A program made the translations under genes and the position numbers. From Phaeosaccion multiseriatum (Eukaryota; Protista; Ochrophyta, other classes), in contig OZ218950.1 in the NCBI GenBank assembly GCA_965112735.1, positions 6,758,001 through 6,822,000 of the forward strand: a stretch of 64,000 nt of DNA, written 5' to 3'. The notes under the pieces were generated by a model. The model made no database searches, was not told the origin of the DNA, and worked only from the letters and a program-made list of their open reading frames with translations. This document shows positions 1,640 to 63,518 of this stretch, piece by piece (the first letter of the stretch is position 1; every line of letters begins with the position of its first letter).

Positions 1640-4600
1640 ATGGAGGAAGCCTCCCGATGGGCACCCGCTCTGGAGCTCGAGAAGACGAGCCGCGCGTCTC
1701 AGCATGCCATCGAGGCAGCCATTGCCGCCAAAGCCTCGGCACAGACCACGGCCGCGGCGGATGCTTCTGCTGCTGCCATCGCTGCTGCAGACGAGCACAC
1801 GGGCGGGGGGGGGGGACGAGGGCGATTTATCATCCAAGGTGGTTGGAGGGTGCCAACAGCACGCTCTCGCACTACCGAGATTGGAGAAACTTGGAGCAGG
1901 CCCTTACGGCGAGTCTAGAGGACGATGTACTGACGGCGCTGGGGAGGATGAGCAGCGACCACGAGATCGCCAAGCAGGCCATGGTAGCTGCCATTGGGGA
2001 AGAGCTGGCTGTGGGGGCGGGGGTGGCAACCAAGGTCGCGCCTGGGGGTCTCGCGCCATCTGCGACTATCCGCGAGGAGGGCGGCGGGAGTGGAGGGGGA
2101 GAGGAAGAGGATGAAGACGGCCAGGACGGGGGAGAGACCGACGAAAGTGGACACGGGGAGAAGACGAAACTTCGAGGGAAAAGCAGTAAGAAGAAGAGGG
2201 AGTCACACAAGGGCTCTCTGGCAATGCTCAGGGATTCGCCCGCGGGAACCATGTGAGTGCTGAGTGAGTGATGAGTGATGGAGAGAGAGCAAGTGTGAGT
2301 GATGGAGAGAGAGCAGGTGTGAGTGATGGAGAGAGAGAGAAGTGTGAGTGATGGAGATAGAGCAAGTGTGAGTGATGGAGAGAGAGAAGTGTGAGTGATG
2401 GAGAGAGAGAGCAAGTGTGAGTGATGGAGAGAGAGCAGGTGTGAGTGATGGAGAGAGAGAGCAAGTGTGAGTGATGGAGAGAGAGCAAGTGTGAGTGATG
2501 GAGAGAGAAGTGTGAGTGATGGAGAGAGAGAGCAAGTGTGAGTGATGGAGAGAGAGCAAGTGTGAGTGATGGAGAGAGCAAGTCTGGGTGACGGAGAGAG
2601 AGCAAGTGTGAGTGATGTAGAGAGAGCAAGTGTGGGTGATGGAGAGAGAGCAAGTGTGAGTGATGGAGAGAGAAGTATGGGTGATGGAGAGAGAAGTATG
2701 GGTGATGGAGAGAGAGCAAGTGTGAGTGATGTAGAGAGAGCAAGTGTGGGTGATGGAGAGAGAGCAAGTGTGAGTGATGGAGAGAGAGCAAGTCTGAGTG
2801 ATGGAGAGAGAAGTGTGAGTGATGGAGAGAGAGCAAGCGTGGGTGACGGAGAGAGAGAGCAAGTGTGAGTGATGGGTGGGTGATGGAGTTAGAAAGAGCA
2901 CGTGAGTAGTGAGTATAGTGAAACAGGAGGCCAACCCCTGATGTACGGAAGTCTGACGAATGAATGATGTCTTTCAAGCACACTCATCAAGCCTCCCCCC
3001 TCTCATCCTCCTCCTCCCTCCCCCCCATACTCCTCACTCAGCCTGAGCCGCCCCTTCTTACTCGCGGAGCCCTACATAGGACGAAACGAGAGAACCCTCC
3101 TCATTCAGCAGTGCCTGCGGTCCCTCGCTAGCACCGTGGACGACCGAGCCCGGTCCAGCAACCTCCTGCAGCAAGGTGCCTACGTAGACTACGCTGCACA
3201 TGTCAAGGCGATGTACGTCGAGACGATCGAGCGAGACACACAGAGGCGGCGTCACAACCTTCCCTCAATCCCTCCCTTCCCCCTCCCGTCGACTCCTTCT
3301 CCTACGGCCTCGACCGTACCGCACAATGGAGTGTCACCGTCGGTGCCAGAGTCTTCCGCTGCTGCAGCTGCTGCTGGTGGTCCAGCAGAACAACAAGGGG
3401 AGGGGGAAGGGTCCAACCCACACCTCCCCCCGCCTCCTTCTTCTGAGCCCCCTCTCTTCCCCTCCACTGCCTCCCAAAGGCCCCTAGAGGACGTCAAGCC
3501 CATCAAGCCTGACGGTGAAGGGCAGAGCAGCAAGAACCGGGGGGCCGAGAGGCGGCAGGCGGCAAGGGAGAAGAAGTGGGCGGACATGTGGGAGGAAGAG
3601 CTTAGCGATAAGCTCTTCACCACTGCAGATGCCCACAACCGCACGCACGTGAGCAGCAGCGGGACAACGAGTCAGGCTATCATCGCTCTGGCCTCGCTAC
3701 GGGGCTTCGACTTTACACTGGACGTAGCCGAAGAGCCCTCCTGTCGGCAAAAGTTTGCTCCCTCTGTCGGGGTCGTGCCTTACATCTCTACCCTGCCGGG
3801 AGGAGGGGGCGGCGTCGGAGCCCAGGAGGAGCGCGATCTCCGCCGACTTGAGCTCAATGACTCTGAGCACAAGGTCATGGCTTGGTTTCCGAGGCGGCTG
3901 ATTGGAAGGCAGCTGCCGCACGAGCTGCGGAGGAGACTGTGGATACGGTGGCTGCTGGATCCGTCGCAGAGGCATCGACGTGGATGGCGTACGGATGCTG
4001 AGCAAGGAGGAGGAGGAGGAGGAGGAGGAGGAGGAGGAGGAGGAGGAGGAGGAGGAGGAGGAGGAGGAGGAGGAGGAGGAGGAGGAGGAGGAGGAGGAGG
4101 AGGAGGAGGAGGAGGAGGAGGAGGAGGAGGAGGAGGAGGAGGAGGAGGAGGAGGAGGAGGAGGAGGAGGAGGAGGAGGAGGAGGAGGAGGAGGAGGAGGA
4201 GGAGGAGGAGGAGGAGGAGGAGGAGGAGGAGGAGGAGGAGGAGGAGGAGGAGGAGGAGGAGGAGGAGGAGGAGGAGGAGAAGAAGCGGCTGGTGCAGAAG
4301 GAGAGGATGAAGCTCCTAACGACACCAAAGAAGATGATCATCTTGATGCTCATGACATCGACGACTTTCCGGATGACGATGGTGATTACGCCGACTGGGG
4401 AGACGAGGAGGGCCCTGGTTCTAAGCGTGTCAGTGGCAGATTGCTGGACAGGCACGACCCTCTGGTCATGAGGAAGGCAGGACGAGGAGGAGGGTTCGGA
4501 GGAGTTGATGACGAAGACGAAAACAGCAACCCAGGAGGCCCAAGAGAGGATCGGAGCACCCTCCGCGCCAAGCGTTACGTGATGAATGTGGCCATGAATG

Positions 4601-5134
4601 TGCATCGCTTGGCCGTGGGGCGGAAACTCAATCTCGCCGAGGCACCCATCCGAGGCTTGGCAGACACTTTGGTCAACAACAAGGCCATGTTGGCGTTTCC
4701 TTGGCTACGGTTACAGCACAGGGTGGAAGCGATGGGGGAGGACGAGAGGAGGGAGAGGCAGCAGAGTTCCCACGCCTTGGGTGGTGGTGGTGCTGCTGGT
4801 GTTGCTGCTGCTGTTGCGCTTTCTGAGGGTGCTTCTTCGGCGAAGAGTGTTGCTTTCGAAGAGGGAGAGGGGAAGGAGGAGGAGAGGGGGAAGAGTGGAG
4901 CTGCGACCGCAAAAGAGGTCGGTGATACGGACAAGAAGGAGAGGAAGAGAGCGAAGAAGGAGGCCAAAAAGAGGAGGAAGGAAGAAGAAGAGAGGGCGAA
5001 CAAGGACAAGGGAAAGGAAGGGGAGAAGCAGCAGGAGACTGACAAGGAGAAGGAAGAGGAGGAGGATGGAGGGAAGGAAGAGAAGAAGAGGAAGAAGAAG
5101 GAGAAGAAGGAGAAGAAGAAAGACAGGGAGAAGA

Positions 5135-5170
<36 letters not shown>

Positions 5171-8100
5171 CCGCAGACGCAGAGGAGAAGAAGGACGGCG
5201 ATGAGCTGCTGCCCCCCCCGGCCTCATCCCCCGACACGGAGAGGCGGCAGCAGAGGTGGCAGGATCCCCAAGACACGTTGCTGGACACGGCAAGGGCCGA
5301 CATTTTGAAGGCGAGGCGGAGGCAGCAGGACCGGGCCCGTGAGTATGCCTTTTGCCGCCTTCGCCATGTGGCGGCTGCGGCTGTGAATGAGCACTACGTC
5401 TACGGAGGTGTGTTGCTGTCCTCCCACGCCCCCATCGCACTTGTGTTGACTTATGTCATGGGGGGGAGGAGTAATGCAGAGCTCGCCCTCGCCTCCCTCG
5501 CCGCCTCCGGGGATGAAGATGAAGATGGAGACCCAGGTACGTATGTGCGTTTGTGTGTGTGTGGGTGCATGTCTGTGTGTGTGCGTGTGTGTGCATGTGT
5601 GTGTGCGTGTGTGCGTGTTTGTGCATGTGTGCGCATGTGCGCATGTGCGCATGTCCTGTGTGGGTGCGTGTGTGTGCGTGCGTGCGTGCATGCGTGTGTG
5701 TACATGTGTGAATGCGTGTGTGTGTGCGTGTGTGTGTATGTGTGTGTGCGCGCGTGTGTGTGCGTGCGTGCCCCCCCCCCCTGGGTCCTGGTGCATGGCG
5801 AGTTGAGGGATAGGATGATGAAAGCAACTTACCAAATGTTGTGTGGGCATGCGGAGCGGCCTTGAAGGGAGCAAGAGAGTATTTGCCAGTTGAGAGCAGG
5901 GACGTGTGGAGAGAAACACTCGTGATGCGTGTTCAGCTAAGCACTGGTCTCCTCCCCGCCCGCCCCCCCTCCTCGGCATCAATCGTCACCCACCCCAATG
6001 TCCTCAGACTTCACTTCTCAACTGGCCATTGAAGGCAAGCAGGATCCTCGTGGTCCCTTCTGGTCCCTCAGCACGAGTGCGATCGTTGCAATGATGGAAA
6101 CCATCACCGCTCACCACATGCCCCCCCCGTCCCTCACGGCCTCGAGAGCTTACGACATTCTGGGCGAGCGCGACCCGGACCTGTGCGCACATCTCTTTCG
6201 ACTCTTTCCCACGACCAGCTCTGCGCTGGAGTGGAGGAAGAAGCAGGCGGAGGAGGTAAGCAGCAGCGGCGGTGGGGTCTTCTCCTCGAGTACCGCAGCA
6301 GCAGGAGGAGCAGCAGGAGAAGTGGGAGGGCGAGAGCAGGGCGAGCGGTCAGAGAGCGGAGTGGGGGAGGCGACCTTTGTCAAAGACGTTCCCACTCAGA
6401 GGAACAGCTCGGGCATTGTGTCAGCAGGTACCAACACTCGGTCGGCAAAGGATGACATCATCCTCATTTGGGCAGAAGATGGTGAGTAGCGTGAGTAGCG
6501 TGAATGGGGTGAGTGAGGGAGTGGAGTAGGTGAGTGAGTGAGTGAGTAAGTGAGTGAGTGAGTGGGTGAGTGAGTGAGTGAGTGAGTGAGTGAGTGGGTG
6601 AGTGAGTGAGTGAGTGAGTGAGTGAGTGAGTGAGTGAGTGAGTGGGGTGAGTGGGATGTGTGTGGGGTGCGTGGGTTGTTTGAGTGTGAGTTGGACGGGA
6701 TGATGGAGGAGAGCTCGAAGAGAGCGGAGAGGGACGGGCGCTCCTCGACACACCACAGAGCGCACCTTACCCCTATCCCTGAATCGAGGCCACATGCAGT
6801 CAGTACCGCACTGACCCTAAGGCTTTTGCCCCACTACTTTCGCTTCCTGTGGCCTTTCTGCGAGCGGCTCAAGGGGGCTTCACTTGCGCACTCAGTGCCT
6901 CCCACCAAGCATCTCCCTCGCCTTAACGCTCTCCCTCCCTCCCTCCCTCCCTCCCTCCCTCCCTCCCTCCCTCCCTCCCTCCCTCCCTCCCTCCCTCCCT
7001 CCCTCCCTCCCTCCCTCCCTCCCTCCCTCCCTCCCTCCCTCCCTCCCTCCCTCCCTCCCTCCCTCCCTCCCTCCCTCCCTCCCTCCCTCCCTCCCTCCCT
7101 CCCTCCCTCCCTCCCTCCCTCCCTCCCTCCCTCCCTCCCTCCCTCCCTCCCCCGCTCTCTCCCCCCCTCCCTCCCTCCCTCCCTCCCTCCCTCCCCTCCC
7201 CTCTCCTCCAAAAAGCTCTCGTCGGGTGGCTGCGAGAAGACGCCCTCCTGCTGGTGTGGGACACTTTATTCATTGCTGAGGGAGGTTGGGCCACCGAGAT
7301 GCCCATTTTTATCGCCGATATCGCCATAATGCTCCGAGAGCCCATTCTCTCGTACCTCAAGGCCGAGACTTTGTATGCAGATGTAGGCCGACTATCACGC
7401 AGCCTCTACACCAAGGATATACGCGATCGATTGCGACGTCGTGTGGCGAAGGCGGGCTTGGCTGTGTTTGAGGCGGCGGGAGGGGAGGAGGGGCTGAAGC
7501 TCCGGAGAGGGGAGGAGGAAGAACGGCGGAGGGAAAGAGAGCAAAGGGAGAGGGAAAAGGCGGAGAGTAGGAGACGCAGGGCGGAGGAGGAGAGGCAAGC
7601 AGACGCAGCAGCGGCAGCGGCACTGGCTGCGGCAAGGGAGAGAGGGGAATTCTTTACGGGAGAGGAGGAGGAGGAAGAGGAGGAGGGATGGGTTCCAGAT
7701 GAAGGGGAAGAGGAAGGAAAGGGGGAGGAGGAGGAGGAGGAGGAGGAGGAGGAGGAGGAGGATGAGGAGGAACAGGAGGAGGAGGAGGACGAGGAGGAAC
7801 AGGAGGAGGAGGAGGAGGAGGAGGGGGGGGAGGAAGAGCAGGAGGAGGAGGAGGAGGAAGAGGAAGATGAGATGAGGAGTGAGAGAAGGAGGAGGAAGGA
7901 GAGAAAGAAGAGGAAGAAGGAGAAGAAGGAGAGGAAGAAAAAGAGGGAGAGAGAGGAAGAGAGTGAGCACAGCACAGGAGTGTCTGACCAGGAGGAGGAG
8001 GAGGAGGAGGAGGAGGAGGAAGATCCGTCCTCATCGGAGAGGAGTATTGCGAAAAGGAACAAGAAGGCAAAGAAAAGGGAGAGAAAAAGAAAGAAGAGAG

Positions 8101-22765: not shown

Positions 22766-24609
22766 CTCTGTCTCTGTGTGTTTGTGTGTGCGATCTCTCG
22801 TCTGAGGTCGTACGCGCTTCGCTTCGCTTTAATTGGGGGGCAGCCGGCCTCGCACAGTCTCGCTTCTTATCAGCTACTCCGACGGCCTTTACCTTTTCGA
22901 GCCCTGCTCTGACACGCCGTTGGCCCCTCCCCCCTACCAATCCCTCTTTGATTGCTCTCGTATTCTGTGCACTCCGCGCCCCAGGCGAGGTACAAGATGG
23001 GCAGGAGGGATGCGACGGAAGGGAAGGAGTTTCCGGCCTCCAAGAATAGAAACTACGCCAGCTGGCACCCGCTTCTCAAAGAGAGGTATCTGGAAGGTAT
23101 TGCCTCCATCAAGAAGCGTATGGATAGAAAAGCGGCAGCAGATGCTGCAGCGGAGGGGCTGAATCATGTCGAGCGGTGTAGGCTGCTGCACCAGTCAGGA
23201 CAAGAAGCGGAAAGAAAGAGACTGATGGGTGTTGTTGCAGGAGGTCCCGTCGGTATGGCTGATGCTGCTGCTGCTTCTACTGCCGCTGCGGCGGCCTTTG
23301 CAGCCGCCCAACGGAAGGGGCTAGCTTGTCCGACAGGGGGGGATCCAGGTCTTCTAGCAGGGGAAGGGGTAATGGGGGTGGCGAGGCAAAGGCAAGAGCA
23401 AGGGCAGTTGACCTCTCCAGTGGCAGCGGCAGTGGCAGAGGCAGTGGCAGAGGCAGAGGGCAAAGTTCAAGGGAGGGTCTCCAAGAGGCCGAGGGTGCAG
23501 AAAGAGGAAGAAGGCGAGGCAGGCGGCCTCGAGGACAGCATAAAGTCAAGGGGTGGATCTGGTGCTGTATCACCAACTCATGCTGGTGCTGTATCACCAA
23601 CTGTTGCTGGTGCTGTTGCTGCTGCTGCTGATGCTGCGACCAATGGCAGTCTACCATGGAACTGGCCGCGACAACGGCAGCATCGGAGGGCGCGGGGCGC
23701 AAAGGAGCCCATTGTGATTTCCGTGTTCAGTGCCAAGGGTGGAGTCATGAAGACAACTCATACAGTGTCTCTGGCCTTTGCCATGGCCCAAACGCGGGGC
23801 ATGAGTGTTCTGGTGTGTGACCTCGACCCTCAGGGCGATGCGACAAGGCTTTTGCTGAGAAGCAACGCCCGCAAGGCCGGATACTGGACGGAGAAGAAAG
23901 AGTGGGAGGGGGAGGACTGCGACTTTCGCGGGTACATGCAAAGGGCCATCAGCCCTGAGGAGCAAGAGCTCTGGGCGGCCAAGTATAACGTCGTAGCAGA
24001 GTGTGCCTTGCCTGACCATGACCCGAACAAGGTCAGGCTCGTTCGCAGTGTGCCAGAGGGGCACGATGTGCTGCCGCTGCGGTATCGCGTCATTCCAGAG
24101 GAGGTGGAGGTTCCAGACAGAGGGACTGGGGAGGAGAAGAAGGGCAGGGTGTGGGTGTTCGTTGGCGGTGTTCACGTGCAAGACATGGAGGAACTGGTGG
24201 CGGCCCAGGAGGGACGCAGCCAGGGGCTGGTGACTTGGCTGTGCCGTGCGACGGCCGAAGCGATCAGTGCAGACGTCTTGTTCTACGACCTATCTCCAGG
24301 CCTCTGCGCCTTTCAGAGAGAGGTGCTGATGGACTCAAGCCACATCGTCCTCGCCACCAAGCCGGATTGGTTCTCGTTCCAGGCGATTGAGTGCTTCCAT
24401 TCCAGAATGGCCGAGAATCGTAGGGTGTTTCGAAGCGTCGGAGGAGGCTATCGAGGGGTCGGCTTGTCGTGGCTCCAGCACTGTCTTCTCTCTAGAACGG
24501 CCACACCTTCTTGCCAGCAGCCAGAGGTGGTGGAGGAGGAGCGGAATGATGTTTTCGACCCACGCGATAGTCTACCCAAGGTGTTGGGCTTCATCATCGG
24601 AGGCTGCAG

Positions 24610-56824: not shown

Positions 56825-58560
56825 CATATGTCTATGCATGTACCTACCTACCTATCTATCTATGTATCTATGTATCTATCCATGTATGCTTATTCGAATC
56901 CCCCTCTTCTGGATTCTTGCTGATGCTGATGCTGCTGCTGCTGTTGTTGTTTTTGTTGTTGTTGTTGTTGTTGTTGTTATTGTCCTTCTGCTTCTGAATC
57001 ATCCACTGCTGCTGCTGTATCACCAACTGCTGTGGTGTATGACCAACAGGTCTAGTGGGTCTGTTCAGGGGATCCATCCAGCTGGAACTGCAATCCCGCT
57101 CGTGCGAGTACTCGCTACTGCTCAAGACTCACAAGGGGGATGTTAGCGCGCAGGTAGGTACAGAGGAGGAGAAGCGGGAGAAGGAGGAGGAGGTGGTGGT
57201 GGAGGAGGAGGAGGAGGAGGAGGAGGAGGAGGGGGGAGGGGAGGGAAGGGGAGGGGAGGGGGAGGGGAGGGGAGGGGAGAAGGAGAAGGAGGAGGAGGTG
57301 CATCACCCCCTCTCTGACACCAAATGTAGCCTCCCTCACCCCCCTCTAACCCTCTGCTACCCACTCACCCTCTCTCCCACCCACCCGTCCACTCTTCTCT
57401 CCTTCCCATTGACTTACTCCCCCCCCCCCCCTCTGTCCTGACACCAGGTGCTGGACAAGATGCCCGTGCTTGAGGAGTCAGCGATGGCGCTCAAGGCGGC
57501 GAGAAGGGCGAGGAGTCAGGACAAGCGGAATGGGGGGGAGGATCATGATGGTGATGATGATGATGATGACAATGAGGATGACAATGAGGATGGCTATGGC
57601 CACGGGAAGCGGAAAGGAAGAGGTGCGGGGGGAGGAGGAGGAGGAGGGGGGCTTGGGCTTGAGCCACCAACAGGAGGGGGAGGGGGAGGGAGCTATGATC
57701 TCTTCGGAGGCGTAGCAGGAGGAGGCGTTGGAGCATCAGGGGCAGGAGCAGGGGCAGCGCCGTTAGGGGGGGGTGCTGACTTGCTCGATCTGGACGACCT
57801 CTTCGGAGGGGGAGGGGGAGGGGGGGGCGGAGAGGGGGGGCTCCCTGCGGCACTAGCGCCGTCTGCTGCCGTCGATATCTTTGGTGGAGACCTCCTGGGA
57901 GGGCTTGGCGGAGGTGCAGCAGCGTTGGGGGGAGGGGGAGGGGGAGGGGGAGGGGGAGGGGGAGGGGAGTTGGCCGCTCTAGCTACCCCACCGGGTGTTG
58001 TGGAGACGGGGGGCTTGCTGGGAATGGAACAAGTTGTACCACAAGCAACGCCATTGGGAGGAGGAGGAGGAGGAGGAGGAGGAGGAGGAGGAGGAGGAGG
58101 AGGAGGAGGAGGAGGAGGAGGAGGAGGGGGCTTAGAAGGGATGGGTGGGTTGCCTGTTGCCTACCCGCCTTTCACTGCTCTCGACAAGGACGGGCTTGTG
58201 GTAACGTTCCACCCAATCCGAGCGGTTCCCATCAGTGGCAGCAGCGAGGGCAGCAGCAGCGAGGGCAGCAGCAGCGAGGTGAAGGTGGTGTTTAGCAATA
58301 CGAGCGCACATGATTTGACGGCGCTCCACTTTCAGGCGGCGGTACCCAAGTATGTCCAGCTGGACATGCTGCCGGCGAGCGGGACGGTAGTGGGGGCCAA
58401 CGGTGGGGGCCAAGTGACACAGGTGGTGAGGTTGCAGAACAGTTGCCGGGGGAGCAAACCGGTGCTTATGAAGCTCAAGATTGATTACAGAAGGGGGAGT
58501 GGGGAGGGGGAGGCGGTTTCGGAACAAGTTCAGGTGTCGAGCTTTCCTCCGGATTGGTGA
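50530..58560 (+). CDS. AP1G1: AP-1 complex gamma-adaptin, multi-exon
   Basis: '[19 protein letters not shown]', '[19 protein letters not shown]', '[14 protein letters not shown]', '[15 protein letters not shown]', and ear domain '[11 protein letters not shown]'. Confidence 0.96.
55425..55626. repeat. Intronic minisatellite, 14-bp unit CAGGACAGGGGTGT, ~14 copies
   Basis: Visible tandem array. Confidence 0.95.
56170..56352. repeat. Intronic minisatellite, 31-bp unit (AAGTGTGTTCTT[G/T]TTCTGTCTCGTGCTGAAG), ~6 copies
   Basis: Head-to-tail copies with no spacers. Confidence 0.95.
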
Positions 58561-58944: not shown

Positions 58945-59925
58945 GGACTGAATGACTCACCTTCCTCAGCCTATGCATAATGCTGTTGAGTCACGATCAG
59001 CGGACTCGCTCAGACAGAGGCGAGGGTGGCATCCGCGCCGCCCCCGTTGGTGATATTCTACTTCCAAACGTCGCCAGCAGCGGAGAGATGAGGAAAAAAG
59101 CGTGGAAACTTACGTAACCTTACGTCTCCTCTCCCTGACTCTTCGCCTCTCCCCCTCTTCTATGGAGATGATCCAATTGCCGGAGAGGTGTTTGTGTGCA
59201 AATGTCCTGATTGGGATTGGTGTGGACTTCATGAGTAGTCAGTAGTCGCGGGCAGCCCGGCTGGCCACGATGAAAGCAAGCTTTGGCTTAGGTGAGGAGA
59301 ACATGAAGGGAGGGCGGAGGGCAAGGGGAAGGGGAGAGAGATGTAAGAGAAGAATGAGCAGCAGCATTTGACGACTTACCTTCTCCCATTGCGAGTGCTA
59401 CTCTTATGGTGTGAGCGGAGTGGAGGCATCTGGAGGACTGCTAAAGAAGAGAGAGACAAAGAGAGGGGTGGGAGAGGGAGAGAGCGGGGCGAGAGGGACG
59501 GAGGAAGCGAGAAATGGGAAAGAGGGAGAAAGATAGACACATATACACACACACACAGAGAGAGAGAGAGGACGGGGCGTGAGCTGATGAGGGCACCTTC
59601 TTATGGAGCTGTGTGCGCCAGGAGAAGTCGCAGCGTCAAAGGGATAATTGCCCAAAAAGGGTGTTACTGGGGTGGTCAACCTCTCATCACTGCATCTCCC
59701 CGTCTGATCAGCCCCCCCCCCCCCCCTCTCTCTCTCTCTCTTTACCCCTCTCTCTGTTCCGTGTATGTGTGTTCCGTGCATGTCCTCCTTCCCTATCTGT
59801 ACTCCTGTCCTCTCGATGCCTCAGGTCCAATAGGGCCCAGCAGAAGCACTGACAGCAGCAGCAGCAACAGCAGTGACAGTTGCAGAGCCGCTGCACATAA
59901 CAAGTGCCCTTTGCAAACATTGCAC

Positions 59926-59950
59926 ATGGCCCGCAACCCAGCCGCGACAC

Positions 59951-59999
<49 letters not shown>

Positions 60000-62811
60000 G
60001 AGAGGCTGCTGTACTACAGGCCACACGGAGGGATGGAGTCAGTACCGCCGTTGCGGTGGGAACGCGAGCAAAGAGTGCGAAAGCAATACTGCTACCGACC
60101 ATCGGCGTAGGAGGCGAAAGCGTGTGGACGGAAGCGGTGGTGGTAGCAGCAGCAGAAGCAGCAGGAGCAGCATTAGCAGCAGCTGTAGAGGCGGCTTTGG
60201 ACTGGCGTGGGCAGTGGGGGTGTTACTGTGCGTGGGGAGCGGGAGCCCCTCGGCGGATGGCTTCATGCAGCAAGGACTGGCGCGCAGTGGGACGGGAAGT
60301 AGTGTTAGCTTCTACTCGGTAGAGCAACAGCATAGAAGTAGTGTTAGCTTGTACTCGGTAGAGCAACAGCATCGAAAGGCGTGTACGATAGGGAGGCAGC
60401 CAAGGTGGACGGAGCAACCTGCCGTGCGCTGTGGTATGAGGAGAGGGGGGCTGGGGACGCAAGCAATGGCAGCAGCGGCGCGAGGACAGGAGGGGGAGGG
60501 CACAGATCACCAACGTGCACAGGACGACGGGAGATGGGGAGCGGGTGGGGGACAGCCACCCCGCCCGTTCTCAGGGGTGGCACCCGTGGATAGAATAGAG
60601 CATAGGGGGGGAGCGACGAGACTGAGAGGAGCAGCGGCAGGAGGGGGGGGGCGGCTGGGCAGTGCCAGTCCAACCAAAGCCGCGGGAGGAAGTGCCGCCG
60701 GAAGGGCGGCCACAGCAGCGGCCGCAGCGGGTGGTGGTGCTGTGGGCGGCAGCGGACCCAGCGGCAGTAGCAGCGGCAGCGCCAGTAGCGGCGGGGGGGG
60801 CTTTACGGGTGTCAGTGGTAGAGGTATGAGGGTGGTTGTTCAAGCGGTAACGGCTGCTGCTGCCGGCGATGGTGGTGATGGGAGCAGCAGCGCCGTCACC
60901 CGACCAAGACCAGGTGTGCGGCGAGCCGTGGGCCGTCCTAGGAAGATTGACAATAGGCCACCAGTTGGGCGACCCAGGGGAAGGCCCCCATCAGCGGGGC
61001 GGTCTGCAGCGGCGTCGAATAGAGCGGGAAAGAAGACGACGGCGTCTTCGACATCTGTGGGCAGGGGTAGGCCAAGGGGCGGGCCCAGGGGGGCAGCGGG
61101 GTCTTCCAGATTGCTTGCGGCTGGGGGTGGAACCCTTTTGGGGACAGGGGGAGGGGGAGTGGATGGGGGGCAGGGGGGCGCTCCGGTGGCAGGAGCGGTG
61201 GTGAGGAGGGGGAGGGGAAGGCCGCCGGGCAGCAAGAACCGAGGAAGAGCGGCTTCTTCACCCTCCCGCTTGGCTGAAAAGACGGCATTTGGGGGGGGGC
61301 TCAGTGTCAACGTCATGGGGAGGATCGACGACACATCAGTAGCAGCAGCAGCAGCAGCAGCAGCAGCCGGAGGAGGAAGAGGTGCTCTGGGTGAAGAGGG
61401 TTGGGGTGCTGGGGGTGGGGCTAGTCTGACAGCGCCTGCAAAGAGAGCAAAGAGAGCTCGCGGACGACCAAGAAAGAACGCGCTCACCTCCTCCTCCTCA
61501 CCAAGGTCTGTGGTGGGTTTCAATGGTTTGTCGGTGGTAGGGTTGGACGCTTTGCCTCCGAAAGTCGTGACGCCCCGCGACAAGGCCGATAGATCCGACA
61601 TCTCGCTGGGCAAGTGGGTGTCCAAGGACAAGGCGAGGCAGGGCCAGGGGCAAGCGGGAGGGAGGGAAGAGGGGCCGGTGCGGAGGACCCGGGCAGAGGC
61701 GTATGAGATGGAGCAGTCATTCAACTTCTTGAAGACCAAGAAGGGCGCCCCTAACGCGGGGCAGACCTCGAGCAACTTTGAGTATTTCAATGCGCTCAAG
61801 CATGACTGCCACCGCCTGCTGGTCAAGGAGGAGGAGTTCTTGTTGGGTGGTTATATTCAGCAGTTTATGTGGAGCGAGCAGAGGAGGAACAATATGACGG
61901 TGGCCATGGGGAGGGAGCCCACACACGAGGAGCTGGCTACGGACCTTAGCTTGGAGCCAGGGGCCCTGGCCAGCGAGATACGCAAGGGCAAGAATGCGAG
62001 AGAGCTTCTCGTGGCCTCGAATCTCCGCCTCGTCGTGTCCATCGCTCGGAGATATCGCTTCCACGGGGCGGCGTTGGAGGACTTGATTCAGGACGGGACA
62101 ATGGGTTTGATCCGGGCGGCAGAGAAGTACGACCCGACTCGAGGCTTTCGGTTCAGTACCTATGCCACGTGGTGGATCCGGCAGAGAGTGCAAATGTCGG
62201 TGAAAAAGCAACGCCTCGTCAAGCTTCCCATTCGTATGCAGGACCAGTCGGAGAAGATTCGGCGGACGGGCTTGCTCGTGTGTAACGTCACGGGGGAGTA
62301 TATAAGCATGGAGGAGGTGGCCGAAAGGCTCAACATCACCACGGCGAGGGTGCAGGAGGTGAAGTTAAAGATGAGGCCGCATTTCTCGCTGGACTTCCCC
62401 AATCGGTCGGGTGGCATGCAGAAGGTGGCGGACAATGCCGCTGACGGGAGCCAGTCGACGGTGGGAGACAACTTGTCTTCAAGGAGTGCGTTGGCGGACG
62501 TCGGTATTGACTACTCGCTCCTACGGTCTCAGCTGGAGTGTTGCATGCACGTGGAGCTCAGTCAGCTCGAGAGAGACATCGTACGGATGCGCATTGGTTT
62601 GGACGATGGGCGAGCAAAGACTGCCAAGGAGCTGGCGGATGTGTTTCAGATGCCGGCGAGGGTGATTCTTCGGGAGGAGAAGGCGGCGATATCCAAGCTG
62701 CGGGAGTCGCACGCCACCTTCGGGTTGAAGAGAGACTACTTTCAGAAGATTGGGATGCCGCAGCAAGAGTGGCCAACCTTCGCCGGACTACGGCCTGAGA
62801 AGGCTGCCTGA
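59926..62811 (+). CDS. Nuclear-encoded RNA polymerase sigma-70 factor (probably plastid) with N-terminal AT-hook motifs; possible extra 5' exon 59270-59291 spliced to 59825
   Basis: Region 1.2 'LLVKEEEFLLG', region 2 'NLRLVVSIARRY...EDLIQDGTMGLIRAAEKYDPTRGFRFSTYATWWIRQ', region 4 'LERDIVRMRIGLDDG'. Hydrophobic stretch followed by 'ADG|F' resembles a bipartite leader. Start codon uncertain. Confidence 0.9.
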
Positions 62812-63004
62812 GAAGGCGGGGGCGACCACTCTTATATAAATATATATATACACACATAAATAGAGAGCTCTCATTTTCTTTTCTTCCTCCCACTTCCCAC
62901 TTCCCTCCCTTACTTCCTCCGTCCTCCCACCTTCTAGTGTACAAAAACGCAAGGGGATTGACTTTACAGGAATCACCTTATAAATATATGGAAGGGAGTG
63001 AGGG

Positions 63005-63518
<514 letters not shown>

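Follow-up and report, generated by a model that had tools for sequence, protein, structure and literature searches.

The 64-kb window analysed here (contig OZ218950.1, positions 6,758,001 to 6,822,000, forward strand) contains a long open reading frame (ORF) in which a bacterial-type sigma-70 core is preceded by a series of GRP motifs of the AT-hook type. This raises the question whether both parts belong to one protein, and what a sigma factor would do with AT-hooks. Six GRP cores in five clusters were found at 60931-61476 in the same open frame as the core, and the five hook strings quoted in the original prediction all proved to lie in frame there and to run without interruption into the sigma core. 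The locus is probably a nuclear ochrophyte gene for a group-2-type plastid sigma-70 factor with an AT-hook arm that would anchor it on AT-rich DNA.

The number of motifs exceeds that expected by chance. In the 294 amino acids (aa) from methionine 487 (60826) to the core, six GRP were seen against 0.56 expected from the composition of the segment, and none of 20000 shuffles of the arm reached six; for RGRP the figures are four seen and 0.07 expected. No comparable GRP cluster was present elsewhere in the 64-kb window, in any frame or place. The six cores are encoded by six codon triplets (GGC CGT CCT, GGG CGA CCC, GGA AGG CCC, GGT AGG CCA, GGA AGG CCG and GGA CGA CCA). No DNA repeat family was found under the hooks, the single match being one of 14 nt between hook 2 and hook 4, and tandem DNA duplication was rejected as their origin. 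Since the codons differ from core to core and no DNA repeat is present, it is the peptide motif that is maintained and not a DNA repeat.

The C-terminal ~370 aa of the ORF match Sigma70_r2 (PF04542; 2.9e-22, 78.7 bits against a 24-bit cutoff, with the invariant residues aligned), Sigma70_r3 (PF04539; 4.3e-07, 30.4 bits against 25.3) and Sigma70_r4 (PF04545; 8e-06, 25.7 bits against 24.1), all over the curated Pfam cutoffs. A region 1.2-like LLxxEEE motif was recognised by alignment at 61777-61860, with no Pfam match to PF00140 or PF03979. By sequence, the nearest solved structures to the core are cyanobacterial SigA chains (8h3v, 1e-46). The predicted protein, with a 1.2-like segment, regions 2 to 4 and apparently no region 1.1, is probably a sigma factor of the group-2 type.

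The window has ~58% G+C, contains microsatellites and is eukaryotic nuclear DNA, encoding SPT16, an adaptin ear domain, a Myb protein and a DNA-polymerase-phi-like protein. Its SPT16 is 57% identical to that of brown algae, 55% to Phaeothamnion (over part of its length), 52% to Chrysoparadoxa and 50% to Tribonema, while the sigma core shares 44% identity with Tribonema minus, 41-43% with Chrysoparadoxa and 39% with Vaucheria litorea. Because of these SPT16 and sigma similarities, the host of the gene is placed, as far as sequence comparison allows, among the ochrophytes near the brown-alga/xanthophyte (PX) clade. In a tree of sigma cores (FastTree, 244 rows) the window sigma groups with the xanthophyte and Chrysoparadoxa sequences, with support of 94 and 99. 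Five sequences of the 50%-clustered library (P0125, P0129, P0141, P0145 and P0162) were left out of this tree as chimeric duplicated bacterial assemblies; they carry sigma region 2 in tandem duplicate, which inflates their partial identity to the query. Since the gene is nuclear and comes from an ochrophyte, the plastid role put forward in the original prediction is the natural reading.

For import into the plastid, the N-terminal part of the frame offers a candidate signal. The hydrophobic stretch FGLAWAVGVLLCV is followed by SPSADG/F (the stroke marking cleavage), a small-x-small cleavage site with Phe at +1, and together these make a candidate for a plastid-targeting signal of the kind to be expected in ochrophytes; its counterpart in the Vaucheria orthologue reads MKAALLALHLCCLLSVLS/FAP. 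All hooks are located downstream of it, at 220-400 residues from the N-terminus. As the candidate signal peptide precedes all of them, the hooks are argued to lie inside the imported protein, and at this distance they would be too far away for removal with the transit peptide; we know of no transit peptide of more than 400 aa. Further in-frame ATGs occur before all hooks at 60265, 60436, 60466 and 60826, before hook 5 only at 61315, and after the last hook at 61708. Starts at the latter two would yield proteins that lack any credible targeting signal. The tandem duplication that follows the signal peptide lies in what is presumed to be the transit-peptide region.

Positions of the features of the sigma gene within the window
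Feature	Coordinates	Strand	Remarks
ORF with hooks and sigma core	59368..62811	+	1147 codons, single open reading frame
Most upstream in-frame ATG before candidate signal peptide	59926..59928	+	
Candidate endoplasmic reticulum (ER) signal peptide	60196..60264	+	FGLAWAVGVLLCV, most hydrophobic stretch of the ORF
39-nt tandem duplication	60296..60376	+	2.1 copies, 95% match, in frame; SSVSFYSVEQQHR twice
Disordered basic arm	60826..61707	+	294 aa; K+R 53 vs D+E 18; G+A+R+S+P 65%
AT-hook 1	60931..60945	+	(VRRAV)GRPRK
AT-hook 2	60967..60990	+	GRPRGRPP, double core
AT-hook 3	61060..61092	+	GRGRPRGGPRG; also resembles an RG/RGG box
AT-hook 4	61204..61242	+	RRGRGRPPGSKNR, extended HMGA hook II / AHL type
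AT-hook 5	61450..61476	+	KRARGRPRK, canonical form, best Pfam AT_hook stretch
Linker, last hook to sigma core	61477..61776	+	~100 aa, no stop
Region 1.2-like segment	61777..61860	+	FEYFNALKHDCHRLLVKEEEFLLGGYI; orthologue homology begins here
Sigma-70 region 2	62008..62214	+	Pfam
Sigma-70 region 3	62308..62418	+	Pfam
Sigma-70 region 4	62554..62706	+	Pfam; diverged recognition helix MPARVILREE
Sigma stop codon	62809..62811	+	from the stop count

Several results weigh against a plastid sigma factor with a DNA-anchoring arm, and they are considered here together with the alternatives to which they would lend support. In the first of these, the mature sigma factor does not contain the hook segment, which belongs to a 5' untranslated region (UTR), an intron or a separate upstream gene, or is lost with the targeting peptide. 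Nine candidate versions of the sigma protein gave no exact match in a collection of 15 billion sequences, which leaves the gene with neither an annotated model nor a transcript. A 28-nt piece of the linker had 0 exact matches in metagenome contigs, and when metagenomes were scanned under guidance of the protein, the matches were all bacterial sigmas of at most 39% identity, found through the generic YATWWIRQ pattern, with no closer relative among them. The G+C content at third codon positions (GC3) is 0.51-0.65 in the arm, which equals the non-coding background, against 0.75-0.83 in the core; it climbs to the level of the core inside the linker, from about 61500. Homology to the orthologues starts only at about 61774, and shorter products would in principle be possible from the ATGs at 61315 and 61708. 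The same frame is also open through microsatellite DNA at 59368-59900 and hence seems prone to staying open. Finally, the nearest in-frame ATG is situated ~90 codons 5' of the candidate signal peptide, at 59926, which points either to an unusually long n-region or to an unrecognised small intron.

The objection from GC3 is weakened because the adaptin hinge and other disordered or low-complexity coding stretches of the window have the same low values as the arm, and low GC3 was therefore set aside as a sign of a non-coding arm. For non-coding DNA, a specific peptide motif present in excess and written with varied codons would be hard to explain, and so would 294 codons without a stop (P about 5e-5 by shuffling), given 7 and 11 stops in the other plus-strand frames within 60826-61707. 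A start at 61708 would leave the protein without a targeting signal, as the one convincing signal-peptide-like stretch is located upstream of the hooks, and in transcript-derived homologues the hooks are found on the same polypeptide as the core. A hook segment outside the mature protein is thus considered clearly improbable.

A translated arm could nevertheless have GRP motifs that do not read AT-rich DNA. The invariant G-R-P core of the AT-hook is present six times in the arm; four of the six cores have the RGRP form, and in each of the six the 11 residues around the core include three or more K/R. The weaker form VGRP is seen in the core of hook 1 and in the first of the two cores of hook 2. 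Hook 5 (KRARGRPRK) and hook 4 (RGRPPGSKNR) fit what we take to be the classical HMGA/AHL consensus, which upholds the description of the GRP motifs as AT-hook-type cores. In an AlphaFold2 model built with a 50-sequence alignment, the arm (model residues 1-284) has a predicted local distance difference test score (pLDDT) of <50 and no secondary structure, and most of the core is at ~90 or higher. Among the points that count against DNA reading, the Pfam AT_hook model (PF02178) reached 14.3 bits on the arm, below its cutoff of 17.4 bits (E = 0.038). Since the conserved hooks of bacterial RpoD also miss this cutoff, with 15.7 bits, the 13-position model is weak for recognising such hooks. DNA binding by the arm and its reach to the promoter are, moreover, purely what we infer.

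The closest orthologues count on the same side. No canonical hook was found in the Vaucheria orthologue, which is transcript-derived and has a complete signal peptide, nor in that of Chrysoparadoxa, and the Tribonema protein P0001 contains RGRKRGRKPK only, with no canonical GRP hook. The latter (371 aa; Tribonema minus, JAFCMP010000070.1, L081 4551-5000) looks N-terminally truncated; its frame is open for 150 codons further upstream and includes the signal-peptide-like ILRCAALLAVSACLL and SSA/FVSPF. Reading the locus upstream of P0001 thus adds a signal-peptide-like stretch, and still no hook. The expectation that the GRP motifs would be conserved in orthologues therefore failed in part, namely for the three closest genera. 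Because the closest orthologues are without canonical hooks, the array of six cores is best read as a lineage-specific expansion.

Functions other than reading AT-rich DNA would include RNA binding, condensate formation, help in import or a nuclear localisation signal (NLS) that gives dual targeting, or the arm might simply be a tolerated low-complexity expansion. The resemblance of hook 3 (GRGRPRGGPRG) and its flanks to RG/RGG boxes would agree with this, as would the sub-threshold Pfam score, the abundance of low-complexity expansions (poly-Gly, poly-Ser) in the genes of the window and the fact that the closest orthologues manage without hooks; KRAKRARGRPRK would also suit a classical NLS. 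The excess, however, concerns the full GRP/RGRP core and not R and G alone, and hooks 4 and 5 fit the high-affinity HMGA consensus. In addition, the same motif has been conserved independently N-terminal of the sigma cores of diatoms, red algae and Verrucomicrobiaceae, which are proteins that deal with DNA. On balance, an arm that serves something other than AT-rich DNA is regarded as rather unlikely.

Hooks are not restricted to the window sigma, contrary to the suggestion that they are without precedent on sigma factors; they are present in diatom, red-algal, some green-algal, Verrucomicrobiaceae and Planctomycetes sigmas. The first homologue search used hook words and was biased to hook-bearing matches, which was corrected by searches with the core only. 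When the core of the window sigma was compared with 1.84 billion representatives, a hook-like motif was found in 13 of the best 150 matches, the carriers including red algae (Timspurckia, MMETSP1354), Micromonas, Myrmecia and one Planctomycetes sigma, which has one hook. A core-only search with a Cyclotella sigma gave 108 of 120 matches (69 of the 81 previously unseen) with RGRGRPRK and/or RPKGRPExVP, and several of the proteins from the diatom search are transcriptome-derived (MMETSP), so that hook and core stand on one mRNA. Across 30 N-terminal extensions of diatom sigmas, which at ~550 aa could not otherwise be aligned, conservation of at least 70% is confined to two islands, KR..RGRPRK and R..SVPGA. 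The second conserved diatom motif, RPKGRPE(F/S/Y)VPGA (P0050, P0062, P0067, P0074, P0418, P0453 and others), has a GRP core followed by an acidic residue and is only a possible AT-hook; in the two pennate diatoms checked, Seminavis and Fistulifera, it is the sole hook-like motif. On the sigma tree, a hook is present in 11 of the 15 rows of the red-algal clade. Micromonas and Myrmecia have one hook each, Prasinoderma has one that is C-terminal, and none of the ~45 land-plant sigmas recovered has any.

In the bacteria, genomes were scanned with peptide patterns taken from the RpoD protein P0104 outside its hooks. The primary RpoD of Verrucomicrobiaceae (Prosthecobacter, Brevifollis, Verrucomicrobium) has two hooks, KRGRGRPR(I/K)HP and KRRRGRPPKNG, in 71 of 80 species loci; among the remainder, one has a single non-canonical match and the others are truncated or mis-picked ORFs. 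The pair is seen as KRGRGRPRIHPP and KRRRGRPPKNG among loci L001-L078 (around 1501-1800 in L001, for example). In P0104 the hooks are located N-terminal of region 1.1, and its RGRGRPPGSKNR is identical to hook 4 of the window.

These results also bear on the chimera proposed originally, in the form that the arm would be a piece of a eukaryotic HMGA/AHL chromatin protein fused to an endosymbiont-derived sigma factor, a true inter-domain product confined to this lineage. Motifs of this class are familiar above all from nuclear proteins of eukaryotes, and the GSKN extension of hook 4 is typical of HMGA and AHL. Nothing else of such a protein was found, though: in a Pfam scan of 60826-61707 and 59926-60825 with E up to 10, AT_hook was the only match, with no PPC/DUF296 domain in the arm region, the acidic tail of HMGA is also absent, and there is no similarity outside motifs of 5-13 aa. 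An identical hook is present in bacterial RpoD, whose hooks are kept in most Verrucomicrobiaceae species, and there are orthologues without hooks. The hook label changes at least 16 times on the sigma tree, which means that hooks have been gained or lost repeatedly, and with ease. A chimera with chromatin-derived hooks is thus an unnecessary assumption and a highly improbable one, and the most likely origin of the hooks is inside the arm, within this lineage, and not a fusion with an HMGA or AHL gene.

A broader reading can be offered tentatively, in which AT-hook arms in cis on sigma-70 factors would be a widespread, undescribed and repeatedly gained add-on for the recognition of AT tracts, either UP-element-like or on the nucleoid. 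Its carriers would be diatom, red-algal and some green-algal plastid sigmas, the RpoD of Verrucomicrobiaceae, a Planctomycetes sigma and the present lineage. Taken alone, the window gene is one more member of a recurrent theme and not a one-off chimera, and with six cores it is the most extreme hook-bearing sigma among those compared. The impression that the architecture is undescribed was borne out, as no paper on AT-hooks fused to a sigma factor, Verrucomicrobiaceae RpoD included, was found in the open-access literature and bioRxiv. AT_hook did not occur in the precomputed Pfam list of any of the homologues retrieved, and together with the sub-threshold Pfam scores this may explain why the architecture has gone unremarked. 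What is new here appears to be an unusually hook-rich, lineage-specific form of an architecture found commonly among public sequences.

The DNA-reading parts of the core itself are diverged. The helix of region 4.2 reads MPARVILREE in the window sigma, and LPAYVILREE and MPPRIILREE in the Tribonema and Chrysoparadoxa orthologues, as compared to VT(R/K)ER(V/I)RQIE. Region 2.4 (62150-62230) is also diverged in the window sigma and in these two orthologues. The divergence of regions 4.2 and 2.4 suggests that reading of the -35 and -10 elements is altered or relaxed in this subfamily. Given such a region 4.2 helix an extra DNA contact would be useful, and the arm may compensate for degenerate -35 reading. 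Hooks and the diverged helix are not strictly linked, because the hook-less orthologues have the same divergence of the helix.

If the arm does anchor the sigma factor on AT-rich DNA, which is the function that analogy makes likely, the following sequence of events can be proposed. Where bacterial primary sigmas have their acidic region 1.1, the protein would have a disordered basic arm of ~300 residues with five hook clusters, and one exon and one reading frame would encode both arm and core. AT-hooks place their R-G-R core in the minor groove at A/T tracts, binding becomes multivalent when one chain has several of them, as in HMGA, and ochrophyte plastid genomes are AT-rich. After import, the Arg-Gly-Arg cores would thus insert into the minor groove at A/T tracts of the plastid chromosome, and several hooks acting jointly would give the sigma factor, free or in the holoenzyme, a grip on DNA that depends on base composition. 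The flexible stretch of ~100 residues that separates region 1.2 from the last hook would provide reach to upstream or spacer DNA. The outcome would be an RNA polymerase anchored on AT-rich DNA beside promoters, a concentration of the sigma factor on the nucleoid, or both, and the arm could be seen as the cis-fused counterpart of WhiB7, of Myxococcus CarD or of the contact between the C-terminal domain of the alpha subunit (alpha-CTD) and the UP element.

The sigma frame has no stop from 59368 to 62808 (3.4 kb), compared to 31 and 39 in the other two plus-strand frames. The 5' part of this ORF is probably promoter or 5' UTR that is open by accident. At 59368-59925 the frame crosses DNA of non-coding appearance, with (GA)n, (CA)n, a C15 run and (CT)8, and each of the other frames has 6-7 stops there; the openness of this part could be due to chance, or to an upstream coding segment or upstream open reading frame. 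An antisense ORF at 60840..61826 (328 aa, Pro/Ala-rich) was rejected as a gene and read as a shadow of the G/R-rich sense frame, with which it shares third codon positions. Runs of (CAG)n and (AGC)n occur at 59952-59998, 60145-60183 and 61337-61367, and a long (GT)n microsatellite (62990-63200) is located directly 3' of the sigma gene. Elsewhere in the window, very long poly-glycine tracts lie inside long ORFs at 3136-5865 (around 4036-4340) and 57750-58350; they are encoded by (GGN)n, and GC3 is close to 0.05 over one block of 300 nt. Window-wide, GC3 within genes is 0.75-0.88 in conserved domains and 0.45-0.65 in disordered or low-complexity parts, with strong contrasts at 57448-58560, 22952-24000 and 60400-61500.

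Promoter recognition in ochrophyte plastids is, to our knowledge, almost unstudied, and diatoms are major primary producers. A sigma factor with its own anchor for AT-rich DNA would, if true, represent a simple principle by which a polymerase of bacterial type locates promoters or remains on an AT-rich organelle chromosome; the comparable mycobacterial hook resides on a separate protein, WhiB7. That Verrucomicrobiaceae have conserved the same fusion in their primary sigma speaks for convergent evolution, and it provides a bacterial system for studying the principle.

Among known systems, a variable N-terminal extension is a distinguishing feature of plant sigmas (PMC2988416). Plant SIG1-SIG6 and algal SIG resemble the window sigma in being nuclear-encoded, with a sigma-70 core, such an extension and, as far as alignment suggests for the window sigma, regions 1.2 to 4 but no region 1.1, whereas here the extension is a multi-hook basic arm and the helix of region 4.2 is diverged. 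The diatom subfamily (Cyclotella cryptica HJC23_005933, the Skeletonema marinoi 'RNA polymerase sigma factor', the Seminavis 'SigA') likewise consists of ochrophyte plastid sigmas, with RGRGRPRK and/or RPKGRPExVP in a long disordered N-terminal extension before the core; it belongs to another paralogue clade, has one or two hooks against six cores, and shares ~33% core identity. The RpoD of Verrucomicrobiaceae also has hooks in cis at the N-terminus of sigma-70, one of them the identical RGRGRPPGSKNR, but it is a bacterial group-1 sigma that is not organellar and has its two hooks before a retained region 1.1. The best-studied functional analogue is WhiB7 of Actinobacteria, in which an AT-hook tied to a sigma factor is placed next to the -35 element: WhiB7 holds region 4 of SigA, its hook contacts an AT-rich motif immediately 5' of the -35 hexamer, and transcription is activated (PMC3905903). 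It differs as a separate Fe-S protein acting in trans, with a single C-terminal hook and no homology to the window arm. Myxococcus CarD combines HMGA-like hooks with an RNA-polymerase-interacting domain (PMC8156234). HMGA and CarD share with the window arm several RGRP hooks in a disordered basic segment; the arm is without an acidic tail or a CarD_CdnL_TRCF domain, and its partner domain is the sigma factor itself.

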